The notes under the pieces are model-generated. The model made no database searches, had not been told where the DNA came from, and was given only the letters and a program-made list of their open reading frames with translations. The position numbers and the translations under genes were made by a program. This document shows, piece after piece, positions 10,319-19,012 of a stretch of 64,000 bases of DNA (within the stretch, counting starts at the first letter, position 1; every line of letters begins with the position of its first letter). Location: the IMG/VR virus record IMGVR_UViG_3300037054_000148, positions 1 to 64,000 of that record; one strand, written 5' to 3'.

Positions 10319-10903
10319 TTAGTCCCAGAAGCAACCCCAATAACGAGCCATTAAAGTCTTAGCTCTCAGGCACTTCCTTTTCAACGGAGCAGACCATTGA
10401 TCGTGAAGCTCCTTATTGAAACGAGGAGTCTCAGTTTCCTTCATTCGAAAGCAATCCTCATGGCCCTCGACCGGCTCCCAATAGATAGGCTCCTTGCTAT
10501 AGGTTCCCTCCGGAACCGTAAACTCATCTTTGAGTTCCTGGGAAGCTTCCAGACCTTCAATGATCTCGGTGAGGGTAGCCTGCCATTTTTCGAAACCAGT
10601 ATCAGTTCCTTCCGTGTCAATGATCCGATCACCCATACCGCTTGGGTAGCCTTGCGTATGCTTCTTGAGATCGCGGAACAGACCCAACATCACGTTTTCG
10701 AGGTAGCTATCCATGTCCCAGTGATCGCAATCTGCGTATCCCCTGTAGCCACGCTGACAGAAGTATTTAACGGCTCTCCAATAGGTCCGTGGGTTGATCC
10801 AATGGCCCCAGAACCTCCACACAGGGCGGAAGCCGACGAAGGCCCGATAGCCACTGCTCCGTAGAGGGTAGAGGCCAAGGGAATAATGCATTTGTTTCTT
10901 CAT
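10319..10903 (-). CDS. hypothetical phage protein
   Basis: 194 aa, Trp-rich, overlaps the upstream stop. Confidence 0.7.
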   Translation of the reverse strand: MKKQMHYSLGLYPLRSSGYRAFVGFRPVWRFWGHWINPRTYWRAVKYFCQRGYRGYADCDHWDMDSYLENVMLGLFRDLKKHTQGYPSGMGDRIIDTEGTDTGFEKWQATLTEIIEGLEASQELKDEFTVPEGTYSKEPIYWEPVEGHEDCFRMKETETPRFNKELHDQWSAPLKRKCLRAKTLMARYWGCFWD

Positions 10904-11256
10904 TCGACATCTCCAAGGTTGACGATAGCTTCGATCAGTTGCTTCTCTATTACTGCGTAGGGGCCAACCAAAACCGCGAAAGCCTCTTCTGGTTTATTAT
11001 CAGACCCCAGCATTAGAGCTTTATAAGCAATCTCATGAAAATTACGATGAATCTCCACGAGTTCCTGATACTCTTTTTTGTCGGCTATTTCCGCATTTCG
11101 ATGCCTCCAAAGCCAGGAGCCCAGATCACAGTTATAGTCTCTTCGAACGGAGAACAAGTCCATAGCATTGAAGGGCTCTTTACTTATGAACTTGACCAAT
11201 CTGTCTCGAATATTCTGATGATCATCAATAGCATCACTAAGCATGTTACCCTCCAT
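10900..11256 (-). CDS. stand-alone CZB (chemoreceptor zinc-binding) domain protein
   Basis: DDH, CDLGSW and HRNFH Zn-ligand pattern. Confidence 0.75.
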   Translation of the reverse strand: MEGNMLSDAIDDHQNIRDRLVKFISKEPFNAMDLFSVRRDYNCDLGSWLWRHRNAEIADKKEYQELVEIHRNFHEIAYKALMLGSDNKPEEAFAVLVGPYAVIEKQLIEAIVNLGDVE

Positions 11257-11286
11257 TCAAAAGAGGAAATGGAAGTTTTAAAAAGC

Positions 11287-11379
11287 TAGACACGTTTGAC
11301 GTTTTAAGGACGGCAAAACTTTTTTGCAGGGGCACGAAGCCAGAGTCTGCTAGACAGGGTAGGTTGCTGCACGTGTCTA
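11287..11379 (-). ncRNA. RCAGCAA stem RNA copy C
   Basis: UAGACACGU-GCAGCAAC...ACGUGUCUA. Confidence 0.7.
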
Positions 11380-11443
11380 AAATTTACTAGGAGTCGCATA
11401 GCGTCTCCCGATTTCCTTCTACGCTTGGTAGATGAATGTCAGA

Positions 11444-11520
11444 TGGTCTTCCTGAGCGGAGTCGAACCGCTGGTCTATAGGTTCGGGGCCTATCGGTTTG
11501 TCCAGCTAGCCTACAGGAAG
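11444..11520 (-). tRNA. tRNA-Arg(CCG)
   Basis: CUUCCUG/CAGGAAG acceptor, loop CCCCGAA (C33), ACCA. Confidence 0.82.
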
Positions 11521-11525
11521 ATTAT

Positions 11526-11929
11526 TGGAGGAGGTGGGGGAAATCGAATCCCCGTCCAAGAAATCTATTGAAGTGCCTTATTCACACGCTTAGTCTGTTT
11601 CTTCGTGACCTCTGCACAGGTATCAGACAACTGTGATCGAGGACTTGCCTTAGTTCCCTTCTCCCCCTACAAGGCTCAGTGGGAGCGTGATCTGTTAGCC
11701 CTACTCGGCAGGCCGAAGCCACCCTCATAGAACTTACCCCCTGGGTACCAGACGATTACCGGAGGGTTTGCCCTTAAGCTACTTCCGCGAAGGAAGGAAC
11801 GAAGGAGCGGTCAAAATCTACTACGTTAATCGTGGCAGTTTTGTTTTAACTGATTTTTAACCCGGCCATCAGTTTTCCGGGGCGTGAAACACATTCAATG
11901 AGAATAACCTGTCGAAACCTGTCACCCCC
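11526..11929 (-). ncRNA. ssrA: tmRNA
   Basis: 5' GGGGGUGACAGGUUUCGAC, 3' GACGGGGAUUCGAUUUCCCCCACCUCCUCCA, G3-U70 pair, tag frame ATINVVDFDRSFVPSFAEVA* at 11836-11774. Confidence 0.9.
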
Positions 11930-12678
11930 TGGAGGTGCTTGACCAACATGCCTAGTCAAGCGTGACTGAAAACTTTGCAGCGAAGTTCCTATGTTGTGCC
12001 TACCTCTCCATTTTGGTAGTTGGGTGTCACCCCGTGGGGATCGTCTTCAGGCAACAGCGCATAGTGTAGCGTCAGTCTAGTGAGTTGGTAACCGGAGCCC
12101 ACTACGGGTCAGCAGAGTGTTGCACCTTGCTTAAGGGATGCTCGGTTAGCCCATCATCATCCTACCGAACCGTTCGTGACTTCAATAAGGCGTTTACGGA
12201 TGGCCAGGGGTATATCGTTTCACCGTTGGCTACGTCTGCACCCGACTCAGCGGTAGATGGGAGAAGCTGAGTATTTGGAGCCCCATTCTGGCTATCCCAG
12301 CGATTCCGGTTAATTCCGGTCACGATCAACCTCTCGGCCCGTGGGTGTTATGGATGCTGGGAATAGATTCATCACCCAGCTATACGGTCTTTGACCACCT
12401 AAAAATGATCCATTCGGATCTAGGGCCGCTTTGTGATGTGATAACCCCCACACCCACGGGGGAAAGCGTGACCGGAATCACACCGCCTCCACCACCAACT
12501 TTTAGGAAGTTGGAAACCGGCGAAGAGGACAAGTCCTCTACCCATCGCCACCGATTTGAAATTGCAAATCGGAACAATCGTAATAGGATCCACGAACCCA
12601 CATACAACCGACATGGCCCAATATCGTGGTAAGTGCCAGTCATCACTGCCTTAAGCCCCGTTAGGGGCTAAGACGAAT

Positions 12679-12753
12679 TGGTTAGGGTGGAGGGAATCGA
12701 ACCCCCATAACTCGGGTCAAAGCCGAGCGCGACTACCGTTGTGCTACACCCCA
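12679..12753 (-). tRNA. tRNA-Gln(UUG)
   Basis: U1-A72, loop CUUUGAC, CCA. Confidence 0.88.
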
Positions 12754-12780
12754 ATGGGACCGGGCTTCCCCGGTCTGACG

Positions 12781-12933
12781 TTACTTTCTCTTCTTGTCCC
12801 TCCACTCCACCCCTTTCTGCTCCAGCAAATACTTTGCTGCCGCAGCCAGAAGGGAGCCACTCTTTGCCACCGCTAACAACTGCACGGTGGACATCTGCTG
12901 CACGGACTTACCGTGCGTCTTGCTTTGCGCCAT
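12781..12933 (-). CDS. small basic protein (50 aa)
   Basis: Read manually: GGAGG RBS, MAQSKTHGKSVQQMSTVQLLAVAKSG...EWRDKKRK*. Confidence 0.5.
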   Translation of the reverse strand: MAQSKTHGKSVQQMSTVQLLAVAKSGSLLAAAAKYLLEQKGVEWRDKKRK

Positions 12934-13056
12934 AAGGCACCTCCAAACGTAAGCAGATGCTTACACAGGAGGACTTTCGGATGCCTCTTTTCTCATTGTA
13001 TTGCTCCTTTATTTATTTATTTCAATCCGCTCACAATTTCTCGTGAGATAAAAACC

Positions 13057-13139
13057 AAGACCCCATGGCAGTTTTGCTCTAACTTTTGTTAGTGAGGACT
13101 GCCAACTCATCGCCATAGGTGATTTGCTGCTAGGGTCTT
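13057..13139 (-). ncRNA. RCAGCAA stem RNA copy D
   Basis: AAGACCC-UA-GCAGCAAAU...GGGUCUU. Confidence 0.7.
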
Positions 13140-13693
13140 TAGTTTGATACTCATATAGGGATTGGTCGCTACCCCAACTTCCTCCATTTTCCGATATTTC
13201 CAGTCTAGAGACTCCCTGCTTTCACAAACACTAGACTGGCGATTTAGGGGACTTATCGGGTGACTGTGTGTAAACCCGCTTTACCCTCGACGGTATCTTG
13301 CCACGGTACACTAAGCCGTAGCTCAGGAGGCCACCACCAGATCTGAATCTTAATGGCATGTCTGCTTTCCACGCTGCCCTATATTGAAATTATGTGGGAT
13401 GAGTCGCTACCTCATCTTCCTGGGATTATTGGGGCTGTTTCAACCCGCTCTCTGCTTTCGCATCCAGGCTCTTCGCTCGTCAGGCATGTGGCTACATGCT
13501 TCCACAAGATGTTTGATCTGGAGATGAATTCTGTTCGTCCGATATAACCGGCATGGACGACCTTCGCACGAGCGGCAGGTACCGGTAAAAAAGCTGCCTT
13601 ATCACTCCGGTGGGTTTCTCAGCATCCTCCTAAGAGGCCAAACCCGTTCTCGTATCACTGTGCCATATATCAGGTGCTCCGCACCCTCCAGAT

Positions 13694-13769
13694 TGGTGGA
13701 CCGCATCGGGATCGAACCGACAGTCTTCGCCGTGCAAGGGCAACGATTTCCCATTAAATCTTCCGGCCC
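13694..13769 (-). tRNA. tRNA-Ala(UGC)
   Basis: G3-U70, loop CUUGCAC, ACCA. Confidence 0.85.
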
Positions 13770-13847
13770 AAAGGGGCGGGAGCGTATCGTGCTCCCGAAG
13801 GGCTGGACCATAGCCCACGCCGCCTAGATGGGCGGATTGGTCAGAAC

Positions 13848-13921
13848 TGGAGCGGGTTATGAGGATTGAACTCACGCGAACAACTTGGAAGGATGTCATG
13901 CTACCACTACATCAAACCCGC
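13848..13921 (-). tRNA. tRNA-Gly(UCC)
   Basis: GCGGGUU/AACCCGC acceptor, loop CUUCCAA, U73-CCA. Confidence 0.9.
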
Positions 13922-14152
13922 ATTTTCCAGTGGGGCACGGTTTCCACTGGAGTTTCAGCATCTAACGACTCCTGCTCAACGCAGCAGTAGCTGAAACAAA
14001 TCGTCGGATGATTGAATCTTGGGTCTTGTTTAAACTCACAAACTGTTCCCTGTTCAATCTTTATTCCACATGCGTGGCTGGGTCGGGGGATCCGCTACCC
14101 CATGCCCCCTCAGTGAGTTTCAGTCAGGGGCAACACTTGTTAATACTCAGAT

Positions 14153-14253
14153 TGGTACGCCCACCAGGACTCGAACCTGGAAAATCCGCTAATCTGGCGG
14201 CTCCTTTCGGGGCGGTATATAAAGCCGCTGTCTTACCATTAAACGATAGGCGC
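14153..14253 (-). tRNA. tRNA-Ile(UAU) with ~31 nt variable region
   Basis: Loop UUUAUAU, two small hairpins in the variable region, normal D/T arms, ACCA. Confidence 0.7.
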
Positions 14254-14255
14254 GT

Positions 14256-14331
14256 TGGTGGACCCACTAGGATTCGAACCTAGGACTCCTCGGTTATGAG
14301 CCAAGAACGCTGACCGCTGCGTCATAGGTCC
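14256..14331 (-). tRNA. tRNA(CAU), probably Ile2 (lysidine type) rather than Met
   Basis: Loop CUCAUAA, GGACCUA acceptor, ACCA. Confidence 0.85.
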
Positions 14332-14340
14332 AGGTCAAAC

Positions 14341-14425
14341 TGGTCCCCCGTGCGGGAGTTGAACCCGCTATCGATTACTCGGAGAGCTTAAAAGGCTCCT
14401 GCCTAGACCGTGCGGCAAACAGGGG
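14341..14425 (-). tRNA. tRNA-Lys(UUU) with long variable arm
   Basis: Loop CUUUUAA, variable hairpin CGA-GUAA-UCG, ACCA. Confidence 0.8.
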
Positions 14426-15003
14426 AGAGCAAAGAAAAATCGTGAAGGGCCGGTGGGGTATGACCTTTGCGGGGTTCCCATCCTCCGTTTAACTTATCCT
14501 ACCCTTCACTACCCTCATTCAGACGCAGTAGAAGCTGATCAATTGGTTGCTCCTAGGGGTAACTGCGTGTTCTCCGTGAGGTCTATGCTGCCGACCAAGC
14601 AGTGCACGGGTTGAACTTTGTCGAGAGTCAGCATCAGGGCCGACCCCTTGTCCACTGGGGGAGACTTTCGTCCACAAATCCAATGGCACCGAGATAGGTG
14701 CCGGATCAAAGGCTCCGGCTGGCCCTTACGTCAAATATCCGTTGTCCTATCTGCGTTTCGGGAACGGGTCTGTGGGGCAATCTCGCAGTCCACCAGCACC
14801 ACCAAAGGCCCCATTGCTGGGGCCAGTGAACGTGTTGGATTTGTCGGCTCCAACTACCTAGTTCCCATTTCGAGGAACGACCATTGGCCTCTGTAATTTC
14901 TGTGTTGCTACCAGCCGTTGACGACCCTTGCGGGAAAGGTTACCAGCCTTTAACGACCACACATCTGACCCAATCGTATACTGATTTTACAAACTGCTAC
15001 GAA

Positions 15004-15223
15004 TGGGAGGAGCATGGGCACTCCTAGATTCGCTGGTTTTGTCGGATCCAGCTACCTATCCGCAGTTTCATGCGGCTTCCGGGGGCCTCTGTAGCTTTTT
15101 ATGCGCTGCTACTAATTGGTTAGCATGAGCAACCCCGAAGGGGTTGAACAGAGGGTTACTATCCCTCGCCAATCACACATTCAAACCCAACACCGAAATG
15201 TTGGGAGGAGCATGGGCACTCCT
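15004..15223 (-). repeat. 22 nt direct repeat, two copies (15004-15025 and 15202-15223)
   Basis: Identical AGGAGUGCCCAUGCUCCUCCCA. Confidence 0.85.
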
Positions 15224-15224
15224 T

Positions 15225-15301
15225 TGGTAGCCCAGGTGGGAGTCGAACCCACAGAACCCAGATTTTGAGTCTGGTACCTATACCAGTTCGGTTACTGAGC
15301 C
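15225..15301 (-). tRNA. tRNA-Leu(CAA) with short variable loop
   Basis: Loop CUCAAAA, 5 nt variable loop, ACCA. Confidence 0.85.
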
Positions 15302-15493
15302 ATTGTGTCTGAGTCACGGTCTATCAGACTACCCCCACCAAAGCCGATTTACGGAGTATCTTTGAATGAGTCTCTGGGGACCGGTTATAACGGACGGTCA
15401 GGAGCTTGCTTAATGCCCTTTAACGTTTCCTACAGCAAGCATCCGGCTTGGGTCATGAAGCCGCAGCCCCGGAGAGGACTGTTGACCCAGAGA

Positions 15494-15580
15494 TGGAGAC
15501 GGTGTAGGGAATTGAACCCTGGTTGCCCTGCCGGGACTGGTTTTGCAGACCAGCGTCAGATCCATCCGACCACCACCGTC
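15494..15580 (-). tRNA. tRNA-Cys(GCA) with long variable arm
   Basis: Loop CUGCAAA, U73-CCA, variable hairpin CCC-GGCA-GGG. Confidence 0.82.
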
Positions 15581-15684
15581 TTAAGTAATCATGCTGAAGA
15601 ACGCGACTCTTCTTAGCTAGATGCTGAAATGCGTCAGCGATTTAAAGGCGTAAGACGCCTCAAACATGATTATGAACATTAGGC

Positions 15685-15825
15685 TCAGCGGTGCTTGTAG
15701 GCACGGGTGTGAGCTTTGGCGCGAACTGGGGCTTTGAGAGCACCAGTGCGGGTACGAATCGAAGCATTTTTCAGCTTGGATTTGTTGATTCGGTCGAAGT
15801 GTTCGACTTTAACCCGAGAGGCCAT
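15685..15825 (-). CDS. small very basic protein (46 aa)
   Basis: Read manually: AAGGAG RBS, MASRVKVEHFDRINKSKLKNASIRTRTGALKAPVRAKAHTRAYKHR*. Confidence 0.55.
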   Translation of the reverse strand: MASRVKVEHFDRINKSKLKNASIRTRTGALKAPVRAKAHTRAYKHR

Positions 15826-15913
15826 TTACCGCATCTCCTTTCTAGTAGCAGAGTTAGCTACTACTGATGCGGTCCCTCGCTTTCTTATTCGTCATGCGTC
15901 TCCTTTCGTGAGA

Positions 15914-15988
15914 TGGTACCGCCTAGGAGACTCGAACTCCTACAAAACACTTTAGAAGAGTGTTACCCGTCCATCAGGCGCAAGCGGC
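15914..15988 (-). tRNA. tRNA-Arg(UCU)
   Basis: Loop CUUCUAA, ACCA. Confidence 0.82.
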
Positions 15989-15998
15989 ATTGAATTTT

Positions 15999-16073
15999 TG
16001 GTCGCCCCACGGAGAGTCGAACTCCGGTTGTTGCCGTGAAAGGGCACTCTACTTACCGCTATAGGATAAGGCG
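15999..16073 (-). tRNA. tRNA-Glu(UUC)
   Basis: Loop CUUUCAC, ACCA. Confidence 0.82.
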
Positions 16074-16976
16074 AAGAGACCTGTTAGCTAGCTCCACTTA
16101 CACAGGAACTCAGTGGTTGCCCCCACTAATCATGAGATAGAACGGGGATGATCTCAGCAGAATAGCGTCAAGGTCAAGTTCTGCTAGCACCTGGGGACCA
16201 CTGCGAAAAGCCCCATACGGAGTAGTGTTACGGGCTCTCATCCCCGGTGGGTTAACGTCACCACAACGATTTGACTTGCTTAAGGCCAGATCTTGGAAAA
16301 ACCGGTTAGCTACTCTCATTTACACCGGAACTCATGAGAGAAGATTCTTGTAACCCTTGAATCTTACGAGAGGGAGGTTCCTTCAGTCGCGCAAAAGCGT
16401 ACGGAACCAACGCAGGGGGCTGCAATTAGCGAGGGTAGCCACCCCAGAGACCTGGACTATATCGCGTCACCGATTCGACTTGCTTAAGGTCGGATTTGGA
16501 GCCGGTCCCTCCAGCAAAGAGGGTGCTTACCCGGCATGATTGAAACCAGTCACCAGTTTTGGATGGCAGTTGCAGAATTTGCGATAACTGGGGGGATCTT
16601 GTTTCTTTTACCCTCATCTGCATCTTACTGATTGGGACACCTCAGCGGGGACTCTTCCTACCCGCATCTCGTTTCGAGGTCTGTAATGCAAGCCGTTGCA
16701 ACGGCTCACCAGAACCTAGTGCTGTTAGGGGGTTGAGAGTGTGGGCCACGAGATTGCACCAACTACCACACGAGTTGTCACCCGCCTTACCTCTGAGGTG
16801 AGATTATGGCCGGAGCCTGTCCCGGCTGTCCTAATTCATCATTGCTGGTCACTGGCTTCTCTGGGAATCAGCTTCCTCGTTTCCGAAGGCTCCGTTCCCT
16901 CCACCTATCAGTTTTGACTCCCGCTTCGGACTTCCATCGGAATATCAAGTGTGAGGGGGCTAGTCCTCACGGTCAT

Positions 16977-17143
16977 TGGTAGCGGAGGCAGGACTTGAAC
17001 CGTGCCACCTCATTCACAGAATACTCAAGGAGTTACTCATCCAGTTTCTACTGAGAGGATCGTCGCGCTTCACCTCATTTTCGTCCCTGTCTTTCTTTCC
17101 AATTTTTCCTGCGAGTCGCTCTAACCAGATGAGCTACTCCGCC
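16977..17143 (-). ncRNA. tRNA-like RNA with anticodon arm replaced by a ~105 nt insert
   Basis: Canonical GGCGGAG-UA-GCUC..GAGC 5' part and T-arm/CUCCGCU-ACCA 3' part. Confidence 0.75.
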
Positions 17144-17155
17144 ATGGGTAATGAA

Positions 17156-17228
17156 TGGTGAAAAAGGAAGGAATCGAACCCCCGACCTCCTCCTGAACGG
17201 AGGTGCTCTAACACTGAGCTACTTCTGC
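17156..17228 (-). tRNA. degenerate tRNA-like gene, anticodon undefined
   Basis: D and T arms present, ACCA, anticodon stem CCUCC/GGAGG closes a 5 nt GUUCA loop. Confidence 0.55.
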
Positions 17229-17229
17229 G

Positions 17230-17378
17230 TGGATGGCGTGGACGGAATCGAACCGCTCTGCGCTTTGAGCCTTGCAAAGCCCTCAGCACTTCCCTCACCC
17301 TCATCTCCTTAAGACCAGTGGTACCCTGATCAGAGACAAGCGGCACTCTGTCCGAAGAGTGTAAAGAGGCCCAAGCCA
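17230..17378 (-). ncRNA. tRNA-like RNA (8 bp acceptor, 4 bp T-stem, non-tRNA body)
   Basis: UGGCUUGG/CCACGCCA-UCCA, T-loop UUCGAUU. Confidence 0.55.
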
Positions 17379-17379
17379 T

Positions 17380-17456
<77 letters not shown>

Positions 17457-17620
17457 ATTTGATTCGTAGTGGGGGCTGTCTTTACAACAGCGACATAGGA
17501 TTGCTTGAGGGCTGGATCAGAGCGGCCTCAACCGTGCTCACATTCATTACTAAGCAGCCCCTTACTATGTACACTTTCGGGAGCCTCTTTTCATCTTCTG
17601 AGCTACCCCACCTTATTTTA

Positions 17621-17726
17621 TCAGGACTATCGGACTCGAACCGACCACCCCGCCCTTATCGGGGGCTGAGCTAGAACCAAACCAAGGCAACTAGTATGCC
17701 ACACCAGACTTCACTGGCGGTCCCGA
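17621..17726 (-). ncRNA. tRNA-like RNA (T-arm plus acceptor-like stem)
   Basis: CGGGAC/GUCCUG stem, UCGG-UUCGAGU-CCGA. Confidence 0.45.
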
Positions 17727-17830
17727 TTGGTTTCGCAGACAAAACTGATATTCTCCTTGTTGGTCCCCTCCTCGCGGGTTCGCGCCTCCTTATAGGTCGT
17801 GGCGTGAAGCTGGGGCTGTCTGCTGAAATT

Positions 17831-17930
17831 TGGTCGCGGAGTGAGGAATTGAACCTCACAACCCCTTATAGATACTCAGTCGAGCTACTAGGAGAGTGGG
17901 TTCCGGACCCCCTTCGCCGTTCAATCCACG
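17831..17930 (-). ncRNA. tRNA-like RNA with non-canonical body
   Basis: CGUGGA/UCCGCG-ACCA, GUGAGG-UUCAAUU-CCUCAC. Confidence 0.55.
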
Positions 17931-18673
17931 ACTTTTCTCTAAAAGCGAGTCTTTCATTTAAACGATCCGCGAAGATTTGTGGGTAGGATCACACATTCCC
18001 ACCCCGTGCCAGAAGTTTAGTGACGCTATGGCTGGGGTGCCAACACTTTGGAATCGTGAGGCTGGCCTGAAGCGTCCTGGCTCGTGCGTCTACTCACTTA
18101 ACCCGGCCTTGTCTTCTGCTCCCGGTTTCCCGGTGAAATCAGAACCTAATCATTTCCGGATCATACCCAATTCTGCTTTCCCGAAGCACCTGATATTCTC
18201 GCTTCACAGACTCTAAGGGTATTTGTTTGAGCAGGTTGCAAAGAATCGATATGAGGTTTTGGTGAGACCCCTTACTCGAACCATTCTATGCCTCATGGTT
18301 CCTGTCAGGATTTTGCAGCGTAGATTCAAGAGCTTTCATTGGGCTCCCGTGTAGCACCTGACTGTCTCCCAGCCGTCAAGCTGGTATGGCCGGTTGACGC
18401 CGGTCACGCGATATACCCACGTTTTTCGTTTGGCACTGGAAAACGTGGAAACCTTTGGCCATAACCCCAACAATCTACGGTGCCGGTTTACCAGTCACGA
18501 GCGTAGAAACATCGTTGAGAGAGAAGCTGATTCGCCGGTTCCCGGTCTACTCTTAACGCCGCCGTGCGAGGGCTAATTAGCGAAGAGTGGAATTGTTGAC
18601 TCCAGGTTTATTTAAACTCTGTCTAGGTTCCCAGAGGTCCATTCCTGAAAATCCCCATCAGCAGAATAAAACT

Positions 18674-18759
18674 AGACGCCTCTGCCCTCTTGATTTTTGG
18701 AGAAGAGTGCGGAACTCCTGGCATGGGGTTTCCCCCTAGGTTGGTTGCTGCAAGCGTCT
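18674..18759 (-). ncRNA. RCAGCAA stem RNA copy E
   Basis: AGACGC-UU-GCAGCAAC...GCGUCU. Confidence 0.68.
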
Positions 18760-18962
18760 TAAGATTTGTATGGGCCTTCACTAGTTGCCCACCCACCAGC
18801 ACTTAACTTTATACAGAACAGGAGAACCTGCGGCTGGTTTCCGCCAGATGCCCTAAAGCACCAAGCAAGTCATTTCTAAAAACATATATTCAGTTGTCAA
18901 GTTGGTTCATTTCCCAGTTTCCTGGGGTTTCGAGGGTGACCTTGATCTAACCCTCTGAACTT

Positions 18963-18992
18963 ATTATACCGTGTATTGAGGGGTTCTGTATA
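18963..18992 (-). promoter_or_regulatory. promoter at the head of the RNA island
   Basis: TATACA-N18-TATAAT, not followed by a long ORF. Confidence 0.7.
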
Positions 18993-19012
18993 CCTTTTTC
19001 TTCAGAAAGTTT

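Follow-up and report, generated by a model that had tools for sequence, protein, structure and literature searches.

The stretch of DNA analysed here (the window) comprises the first 64,000 nucleotides of the IMG/VR record IMGVR_UViG_3300037054_000148, a 313,597-bp jumbo phage genome from peat that is rated complete, referred to as G000 where it has to be told apart from related records. The genome carries about 50 tRNA genes in three clusters, which ARAGORN assigns to every amino acid except asparagine, together with a tmRNA at 11526-11929 and an amber-suppressor-type tRNA with anticodon CUA at genome 223627-223700. The RNA element under study, element A, is a 167-nt tRNA-like sequence on the minus strand at window 16977-17143, 12 nt downstream of a tRNA-Glu. 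It sits within an island of about 8 kb (window about 10900-19000) which has no reading frame of 120 codons or more, is packed with tRNAs, the tmRNA and unknown RNAs, and has all its RNA genes on the minus strand.

Architecture of the element and its distinction from chance

Read from 5′ to 3′ on the minus strand, the element and its downstream flank consist of the following parts.

16977-17143 (minus): whole element A, a 167-nt tRNA-like scaffold RNA gene with payload
17137-17143 (minus): acceptor stem, 5′ strand GGCGGAG, followed by U8 and A9
17118-17134 (minus): D arm, stem GCUC/GAGC with loop AUCUGGUUA containing G18 G19, followed by G26
17107-17116 (minus): 5′ strand of the 10-bp extended "anticodon" stem, ACUCGCAGGA
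17022-17106 (minus): payload of 85 nt, 67% purine overall and 80% in its first 45 nt, containing the Shine-Dalgarno-like AAUGAGGUG, three GGA motifs and small hairpins
17012-17021 (minus): 3′ strand of the extended stem, UUCUGUGAAU, containing the heptamer CUGUGAA and followed by GAGGUG
17007-17015 (minus): second copy of AAUGAGGUG, spanning the base of the arm and the variable region
16988-17005 (minus): T arm, stem GCA(C)GG/CCUGC with a bulged C, loop UUCAAGU
16977-16987 (minus): acceptor 3′ strand CUCCGCU (16981-16987), discriminator A73 and an encoded CCA
16951-16970 (minus): 6-bp hairpin located 6 nt after the CCA end, a weak terminator-like or processing hairpin

The acceptor stem consists of seven pairs, six of them Watson-Crick and the first a G1.U72 pair, and the extended stem forms 9 of 10 pairs with a single C.A mismatch. 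The conserved nucleotides of the tertiary core (U8, G18 G19 and the UUCAAGU loop between GG and CC) are all intact. The earlier note, which had described a tRNA body of near-perfect acceptor, D and T arms with an extended anticodon stem closing a large A/G-rich region without an anticodon loop or intron core, was right about what lies at this position, with two corrections. First, the T arm is not near-perfect, since only two pairs form in register and five pairs require the bulged C, although apart from this extra C it is 90% identical to the T arm and acceptor of the phage's own tRNA-Met at 205447-205475. Second, the heptamer CUGUGAA in the 3′ strand of the long stem can be read as an anticodon loop.

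The latter reading bears on the possibility that A is an intron-containing tRNA, in which 92 nt between C32 and U33 would be removed by an unknown endonuclease and the ends sealed by the phage's RNA ligase to give a 75-nt tRNA with anticodon GUG that takes part in translation. Neither the Rfam tRNA model (no hit even at E up to 10) nor ARAGORN at its default setting, or at a 95% threshold with introns allowed, reports the element, but ARAGORN with introns allowed and the threshold lowered to 90% calls a tRNA-His(GUG) with a 7-nt loop, U33 and a 92-nt intron. None of 2000 dinucleotide shuffles of the whole sequence is called at that threshold, so that the tRNA likeness is real; when the scaffold is kept and only the middle 106 nt are shuffled, however, 1806 of 2000 sequences are still called as intron-bearing tRNAs, and 114 of them (5.7%) pass even the default threshold, which the real sequence fails. 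The scaffold therefore carries all the signal, and the supposed His anticodon with its intron is no better than chance. The spliced product would also be a poor tRNA-His, with an A27.G43 mismatch, a bulged T stem and A73 without G-1, and the phage already has a canonical tRNA-His with C73.

The phage encodes a T4 Rnl1-family RNA ligase (195078-195689) and a CCA-adding or poly(A)-polymerase-type nucleotidyltransferase domain inside a 2208-codon open frame (299947-300300), whereas profile searches of the 313.6-kb genome returned no RtcB or splicing endonuclease (no PF01974 or PF01139 match), no reverse transcriptase and no Ro60/TROVE gene. The putative splice sites lie opposite each other in the long helix, a point in favor of the intron reading, but the helix is continuous and shows no bulge-helix-bulge geometry; enzymes of the host were not examined. 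The insert of 85-105 nt is too short for a group I intron, which has about 200 nt or more with a conserved P3-P9 catalytic core, and no Intron_gpI match was obtained at E up to 10. Taken as one contiguous sequence, A has a 10-bp stem closing 85 nt instead of a 5-bp anticodon stem closing a 7-nt loop, and this, together with the bulged T stem and G1.U72, argues against an ordinary decoding tRNA.

The payload itself gave few clues as to its role. The fold energies of A, of its payload, of the paralogue B described below and of a neighboring 170-nt unit are all equal to those of shuffled sequences (z about 0), so that a folded aptamer, as had been suggested in the earlier note, is not supported. 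A complementarity search of the insert against phage sequence, which the note had named as a check, found no match longer than 12 nt in the 314-kb genome, which is at chance level, and an antisense role against phage RNAs is therefore not supported either. The payload has no convincing reading frame and no match to any Rfam family, and the complement of ACUCG occurs four times, so that alternative pairings are possible. A role as a CsrA sponge was considered, but four GGA motifs lie in the stem and payload, three of them within the 85-nt payload against about 2.5 expected there, which is not significant. CUGAUGA-like and GAAAC strings were inspected by eye for a hammerhead or other small ribozyme, but none is complete and Rfam finds none.

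Relatives, mobility and further tRNA-like genes of the phage

A second phage lineage (IMGVR_UViG_3300037149_000105, represented by loci L003 and L008 and by the JGI contig L005) carries A with 167/167 identity, although the flanking genes are only 78-85% identical and the neighboring tRNA-Pro and tRNA-Glu 83-84%. The insert is thus not a one-off disruption; the earlier note had set out in advance that such a disruption, absent in relatives, would count against its reading. In L003, A lies behind a different upstream neighbor, a 245-nt unknown stretch rather than tRNA-Glu, and the tRNA at the place of tRNA-Glu (L003:3579-3654) is called with an irregular anticodon loop (a four-base "aaaa" in L003, a two-base "tt" in L005). 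By contrast, a third strain (L007), which is 98% identical to this phage in flanking genes, lacks window 16906-17727 altogether, that is tRNA-Pro, two tRNA-like genes, tRNA-Glu, A and the following 71 nt including the 16951-16970 hairpin, which is part of the cassette shared with L003, while it keeps the downstream RNA from about 16898 onwards. A is therefore an accessory cassette that has recently moved or been exchanged. It should be noted that several blocks of the RNA island are 97-99.6% identical between this phage and the L003 lineage, so that the identity of A is not specific to it and could reflect recent exchange of the cassette rather than selection. In the minus-strand sequence at window 16100-16500, imperfect tandem repeats of about 204-230 nt share motifs such as CCUUAAGCAAGUC.AAUCG and GAGUUCC.GUGUAA.UG.AG.UAGCUAAC.GG, which are conserved in the diverged L003 lineage.

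More distant homologues were sought in several collections. A blastn search of GenBank phages gave none, exact and degenerate patterns in IMG/VR gave only identical copies, JGI metagenome contigs gave one contig, of the L003 type, and 185,579 prokaryote genomes gave none for the T-arm signature or the 5′ half. A locus search with a flanking protein found only strains of the same phage, Tunturiibacter phage Tunturi_5 shares only tRNAs, and a search of the open frame across A against 5.8 billion predicted proteins, intended to retrieve further contigs, found no candidates. An intron-less copy was not found in these collections either, the spliced-junction pattern being absent from IMG/VR. Every copy found is identical, and there is consequently no covariation evidence.

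Within the same genome, however, A is one of a family of tRNA-like genes with altered anticodon arms, several of which relaxed ARAGORN calls as intron tRNAs.

207552-207635 (genome, plus): nearly the same acceptor, D and T arms as A, with an 11-bp anticodon stem capped by a tetraloop at the same place, so that no anticodon is possible
14153-14253 (window, minus): 101 nt, scoring 44.8 bits with the Rfam tRNA model
209450-209565 (genome, plus): 116 nt
17831-17971 (window, minus): 141 nt
226794-226970 (genome, plus; B): 177 nt with a 106-nt insert and a 5-nt UACCA tail, followed by an intrinsic terminator
17229-17379 (window, minus): acceptor stem and T arm but no D arm
203548-203615 and 204110-204176 (genome; 3049-3116 and 3611-3677 of locus L011): two YrlA-like tRNA-like domains (T arm, closed acceptor hairpin, D arm) between tRNA genes of the second tRNA island

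The inserts of 14153-14253, 17831-17971, 209450-209565 and 226794-226970 measure about 15-106 nt. The two YrlA-like domains score 32 bits with E about 1e-4, below the Rfam cut-off of 69, and their D arm is almost that of A. A further sub-threshold match, to the wcaG RNA motif, was obtained on the minus strand at window 12480-12580 (30.9 bits against a cut-off of 42, E 0.011).

These data also bear on a second alternative, that A is a decaying gene, i.e. the remnant of a tandem tRNA pair or of a tRNA hit by an insertion, passively transcribed within the tRNA operon and without a function of its own, its identity between strains reflecting recent recombination of the island. The insert resembles, weakly and in the right order, a tRNA 3′ half followed by a 5′ half (local alignment, p about 0.005), which hints that A arose from the decayed junction of a tRNA dimer, and the bulged T stem, the lack of a structure signal in the insert, the absence of the cassette from L007 and the high identity of whole blocks of the island would all fit this view. 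On the other hand, the intact tertiary core, the several paralogues of the same design, the occurrence of A in several contexts (after tRNA-Glu in G000, after the 245-nt unknown stretch in L003 and behind a GAAA hairpin in the cycle form) and the RNA evidence described below speak against it, and it is regarded as unlikely, if somewhat less so than the other two alternatives considered here.

Representation of the element in metatranscriptomes

About twenty metatranscriptomes from three habitat types, peat, permafrost and a bioreactor, hold 91-100% of the sampled 31-mers of the 167-nt sequence, showing that the RNA is present with its insert; failure of the RNA to accumulate had been named beforehand as grounds for rejecting the note's reading, and this was not what was found. 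Four of these runs (X15, X16, X25 and X32) were aligned to window 14100-17700, where A is covered without a single difference and no joint that skips the 92 nt was seen. These are assembled contigs, and mature 75-nt tRNAs are almost invisible in these libraries, the ordinary tRNAs beside A having no depth of their own, so that a spliced product could have been missed. Given the chance-level anticodon, and a paralogue at 207552-207635 in which no anticodon is possible, the intron-bearing tRNA is nevertheless considered improbable. Run X32 also holds an ordinary tRNA(CAU)-like contig whose first 29 nt match A at 90% or more (joint 17188>17115), which fits the "Met-like" character attributed to the acceptor in the earlier note.

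In runs X15 and X16, A lies on linear contigs of the L003 type, which run from 47 nt upstream of A through A into 316-570 nt of downstream sequence, so that discrete 167-nt ends are not shown. This would be consistent with a third alternative, in which A is the tRNA-like 5′ domain of a transcript of about 0.8-1.1 kb (window about 17150 to 16074-16410) acting as one large structured RNA, comparable to GOLLD RNAs that carry covalently linked tRNAs. A and the following 570 nt (to window about 16410) indeed form one block nearly identical between G000 and L003, and GOLLD and ROOL RNAs lie near phage tRNA islands, with GOLLD linkers sometimes containing tRNAs (bioRxiv 10.1101/2024.12.08.627333). 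However, L007 keeps the downstream RNA while lacking A, no Rfam GOLLD or ROOL hit was obtained, and in run X25 A (about 99x) and the unit at 16633-16802 (about 912x) have very different depths while the stretch between them has none, and this reading is accordingly the least likely of the alternatives.

In runs X25 and X32 the contig carrying A is instead a cycle, in which position 17143 (G1) is joined back to 16977 (the last A of CCA) through 20 or 21 extra letters (22 linker nt in X32, counting the U at −1). In RNA sense the junction reads CCA-GGGCUUGGAAACGAGCCCUG(GU)-GGCGG, a perfect 7-bp hairpin with a GAAA tetraloop. The records are 217 and 219 nt long, that is units of 187 and 189 nt plus the 30-nt overlap expected of a closed path at k = 31. 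In X25 the spacers beside A have about zero depth and the depth of the bins next to A is fully accounted for by this contig; the phage-type spacers are therefore absent while the linker is retained. The linker was found neither in the three related genome records (G000, G001 and G002) nor in IMG/VR, and it must be encoded in an unsampled genome. Whether the molecule is covalently closed is left undecided by these observations, since DNA reads of the same samples were not compared with the junction, and both tandem A-hairpin-A copies and a circular RNA remain possible.

A neighboring 170-nt unit (window 16633-16802, minus strand) forms an exact head-to-tail cycle at about 912x in X25, and a 152-nt variant (16644-16795) in X32. 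Its ends form an 8-bp stem with a ...CCA 3′ tail, and the junction makes a 7-nt loop. The unit is single-copy in three DNA strains, including L003 and L007, whose alleles the cycle carries, and its junctions are absent from IMG/VR. The simplest reading for this unit is a circular RNA, of which it is a candidate. Two further abundant RNAs of the island, both on the minus strand, are in contrast linear and end in sequencing adapters. The first (14833-15161) is a discrete RNA of about 322-329 nt with a depth of up to 3123 in X25, present in all four runs and with adapters directly at its 3′ end (14833) in two of them (X25 and X32), which contains two copies of a module (UACAGAGGCC ... UAGGUAG.UGGA.CCGACAAA.CCA) and has no Rfam match. 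The second (14448-14590) is a discrete RNA of about 143 nt with a depth of about 705 in X25 and an adapter at 14448, again without an Rfam match.

A proposed non-decoding tRNA mimic and its closest counterparts

The reading best supported by these results, held with about even confidence, is that element A is a non-decoding tRNA mimic, most likely a stable one rather than a broken or spliced tRNA, i.e. a natural tRNA-scaffold RNA. In this model A is transcribed with the tRNAs of the island, and its tRNA-shaped core (acceptor stem, D arm, T loop and encoded CCA) most likely lets the cell's tRNA-processing enzymes cut it out and shields its ends from exonucleases, while the 10-bp helix in place of the anticodon stem holds out an 85-nt, mostly single-stranded, purine-rich segment with which the RNA is kept. 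Of these elements, the presence of the unspliced RNA is shown by the analysis, whereas the absence of a spliced form is not, processing and protection are inferred, and the role of the payload is speculative. The payload is thought most likely to act as a single-stranded binding platform, which may bind a pyrimidine-rich partner such as the 3′ end of 16S rRNA, given its Shine-Dalgarno-like AAUGAGGUG, or may instead bind an RNA-binding protein, although no partner has been identified. The gene would be an accessory cassette moving between tRNA-island contexts, which may have arisen from the decayed junction of a tRNA dimer. The interpretation given in the earlier note is thus supported in part: a natural RNA with a tRNA body and a foreign segment in the anticodon arm is borne out, the miniature tmRNA, the antisense role and the aptamer are not supported, and a decoy role was not tested.

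Among known systems, A works most like the tRNA-like module of the YrlA-type bacterial and phage Y RNAs (Rfam RF02553) and like the engineered tRNA scaffold. In YrlA, a tRNA-like domain with D arm, T arm and acceptor stem is joined to a non-tRNA module through the position of the anticodon stem, and Chen et al. (2014, PMC4201824) proposed that the tRNA fold protects Y RNAs from nucleases; M. smegmatis YrlA is cut by RNase P and receives CCA. In YrlA, however, the RNA ends lie in the module that replaces the anticodon arm, a Ro60-binding stem, and the acceptor stem is closed by a loop, whereas in the genomic copy of A the ends are at the acceptor stem and the arm is closed. The payload also lacks the GNCGAAN(0-1)G motif, the nearest string, GACGAAAAUG, not fitting it, and no neighboring Ro60 gene was found in the phage genome, a host Ro60 not having been looked for. 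The Rfam YrlA score over A, the only match obtained there at E up to 10, is 21.8 bits against the cut-off of 69, and it spans the adjacent tRNA-Glu, the known dimeric-tRNA false positive. In the engineered scaffold reported by Ponchon and Dardel (2007), the anticodon loop of a Met or Lys tRNA is replaced by a stem carrying the RNA of interest, the tRNA body then giving processing and stability in bacteria. That design is identical to that of A, but the scaffold is man-made, while A is natural, has a bulged T stem and carries a payload of no known function.

A tmRNA likewise joins a tRNA-like acceptor and T-arm domain with CCA to a long non-tRNA segment, and the gene lies in the same RNA island, but tmRNA lacks a D stem and has G3.U70 for alanylation, pseudoknots and a tag reading frame with a resume codon. 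A has a full D arm and C3-G70, with no credible reading frame or pseudoknots, and neither ARAGORN nor Rfam calls a tmRNA here, although both find the real one at 11526-11929. GOLLD and ROOL are abundant phage non-coding RNAs located in tRNA islands, and GOLLD can be covalently linked to tRNAs, yet the topology is reversed, in that in GOLLD a tRNA sits inside a large RNA while here a small payload sits inside a tRNA body, and there is no sequence match. Intron-bearing tRNAs, such as those with bacterial group I introns in the anticodon loop or the archaeal pre-tRNA-Trp, whose intron of about 105 nt encodes a C/D box guide RNA, have a segment of similar size interrupting the anticodon arm, and in the archaeal case the insert has a function of its own, but the features expected of either type of intron were not found in A. 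A is therefore a member of neither the YrlA RNAs nor the engineered scaffolds, nor of tmRNA or the intron-bearing tRNAs. Finally, the cycle seen in the RNA libraries, which joins the CCA end to G1 through a short linker, has the arrangement of the circular pre-tRNA intermediates reported for permuted tRNA genes in red algae (Soma et al. 2007). Those intermediates arise in eukaryotes by the bulge-helix-bulge splicing machinery and mature into normal tRNAs, whereas here the organism is a phage of bacteria and the DNA copy is not permuted.

The possible circular form is the most novel point raised by these data, although it is put forward only tentatively and is thought less likely than not. In this view the RNA island of the phage makes covalently closed circular RNAs, and A exists in nature also as a circular tRNA mimic of about 187-189 nt in which both "ends" are closed, the acceptor stem by the GAAA-tetraloop hairpin and the anticodon arm by the payload, which would make it topologically intermediate between a tRNA and a YrlA Y RNA. 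The neighboring 170-nt unit would be circularized by sealing a broken 7-nt loop on an 8-bp stem, the kind of substrate that the phage's Rnl1-like ligase is known to seal in T4.

For annotation, the element warns that relaxed intron-aware tRNA finders will call such scaffolds as intron-bearing tRNAs by chance. tRNA mimics such as tmRNA, Y RNAs and viral tRNA-like structures are few, and each has revealed new biology; this element would be a natural counterpart of the engineered tRNA scaffold, only one of a family of tRNA-like genes with altered anticodon arms, in a jumbo phage whose RNA island also produces several very abundant unknown RNAs. If the head-to-tail forms are true circles, this would be a rare case of DNA-encoded circular RNAs in a bacterial virus, and it would also suggest a new job for phage RNA ligases.
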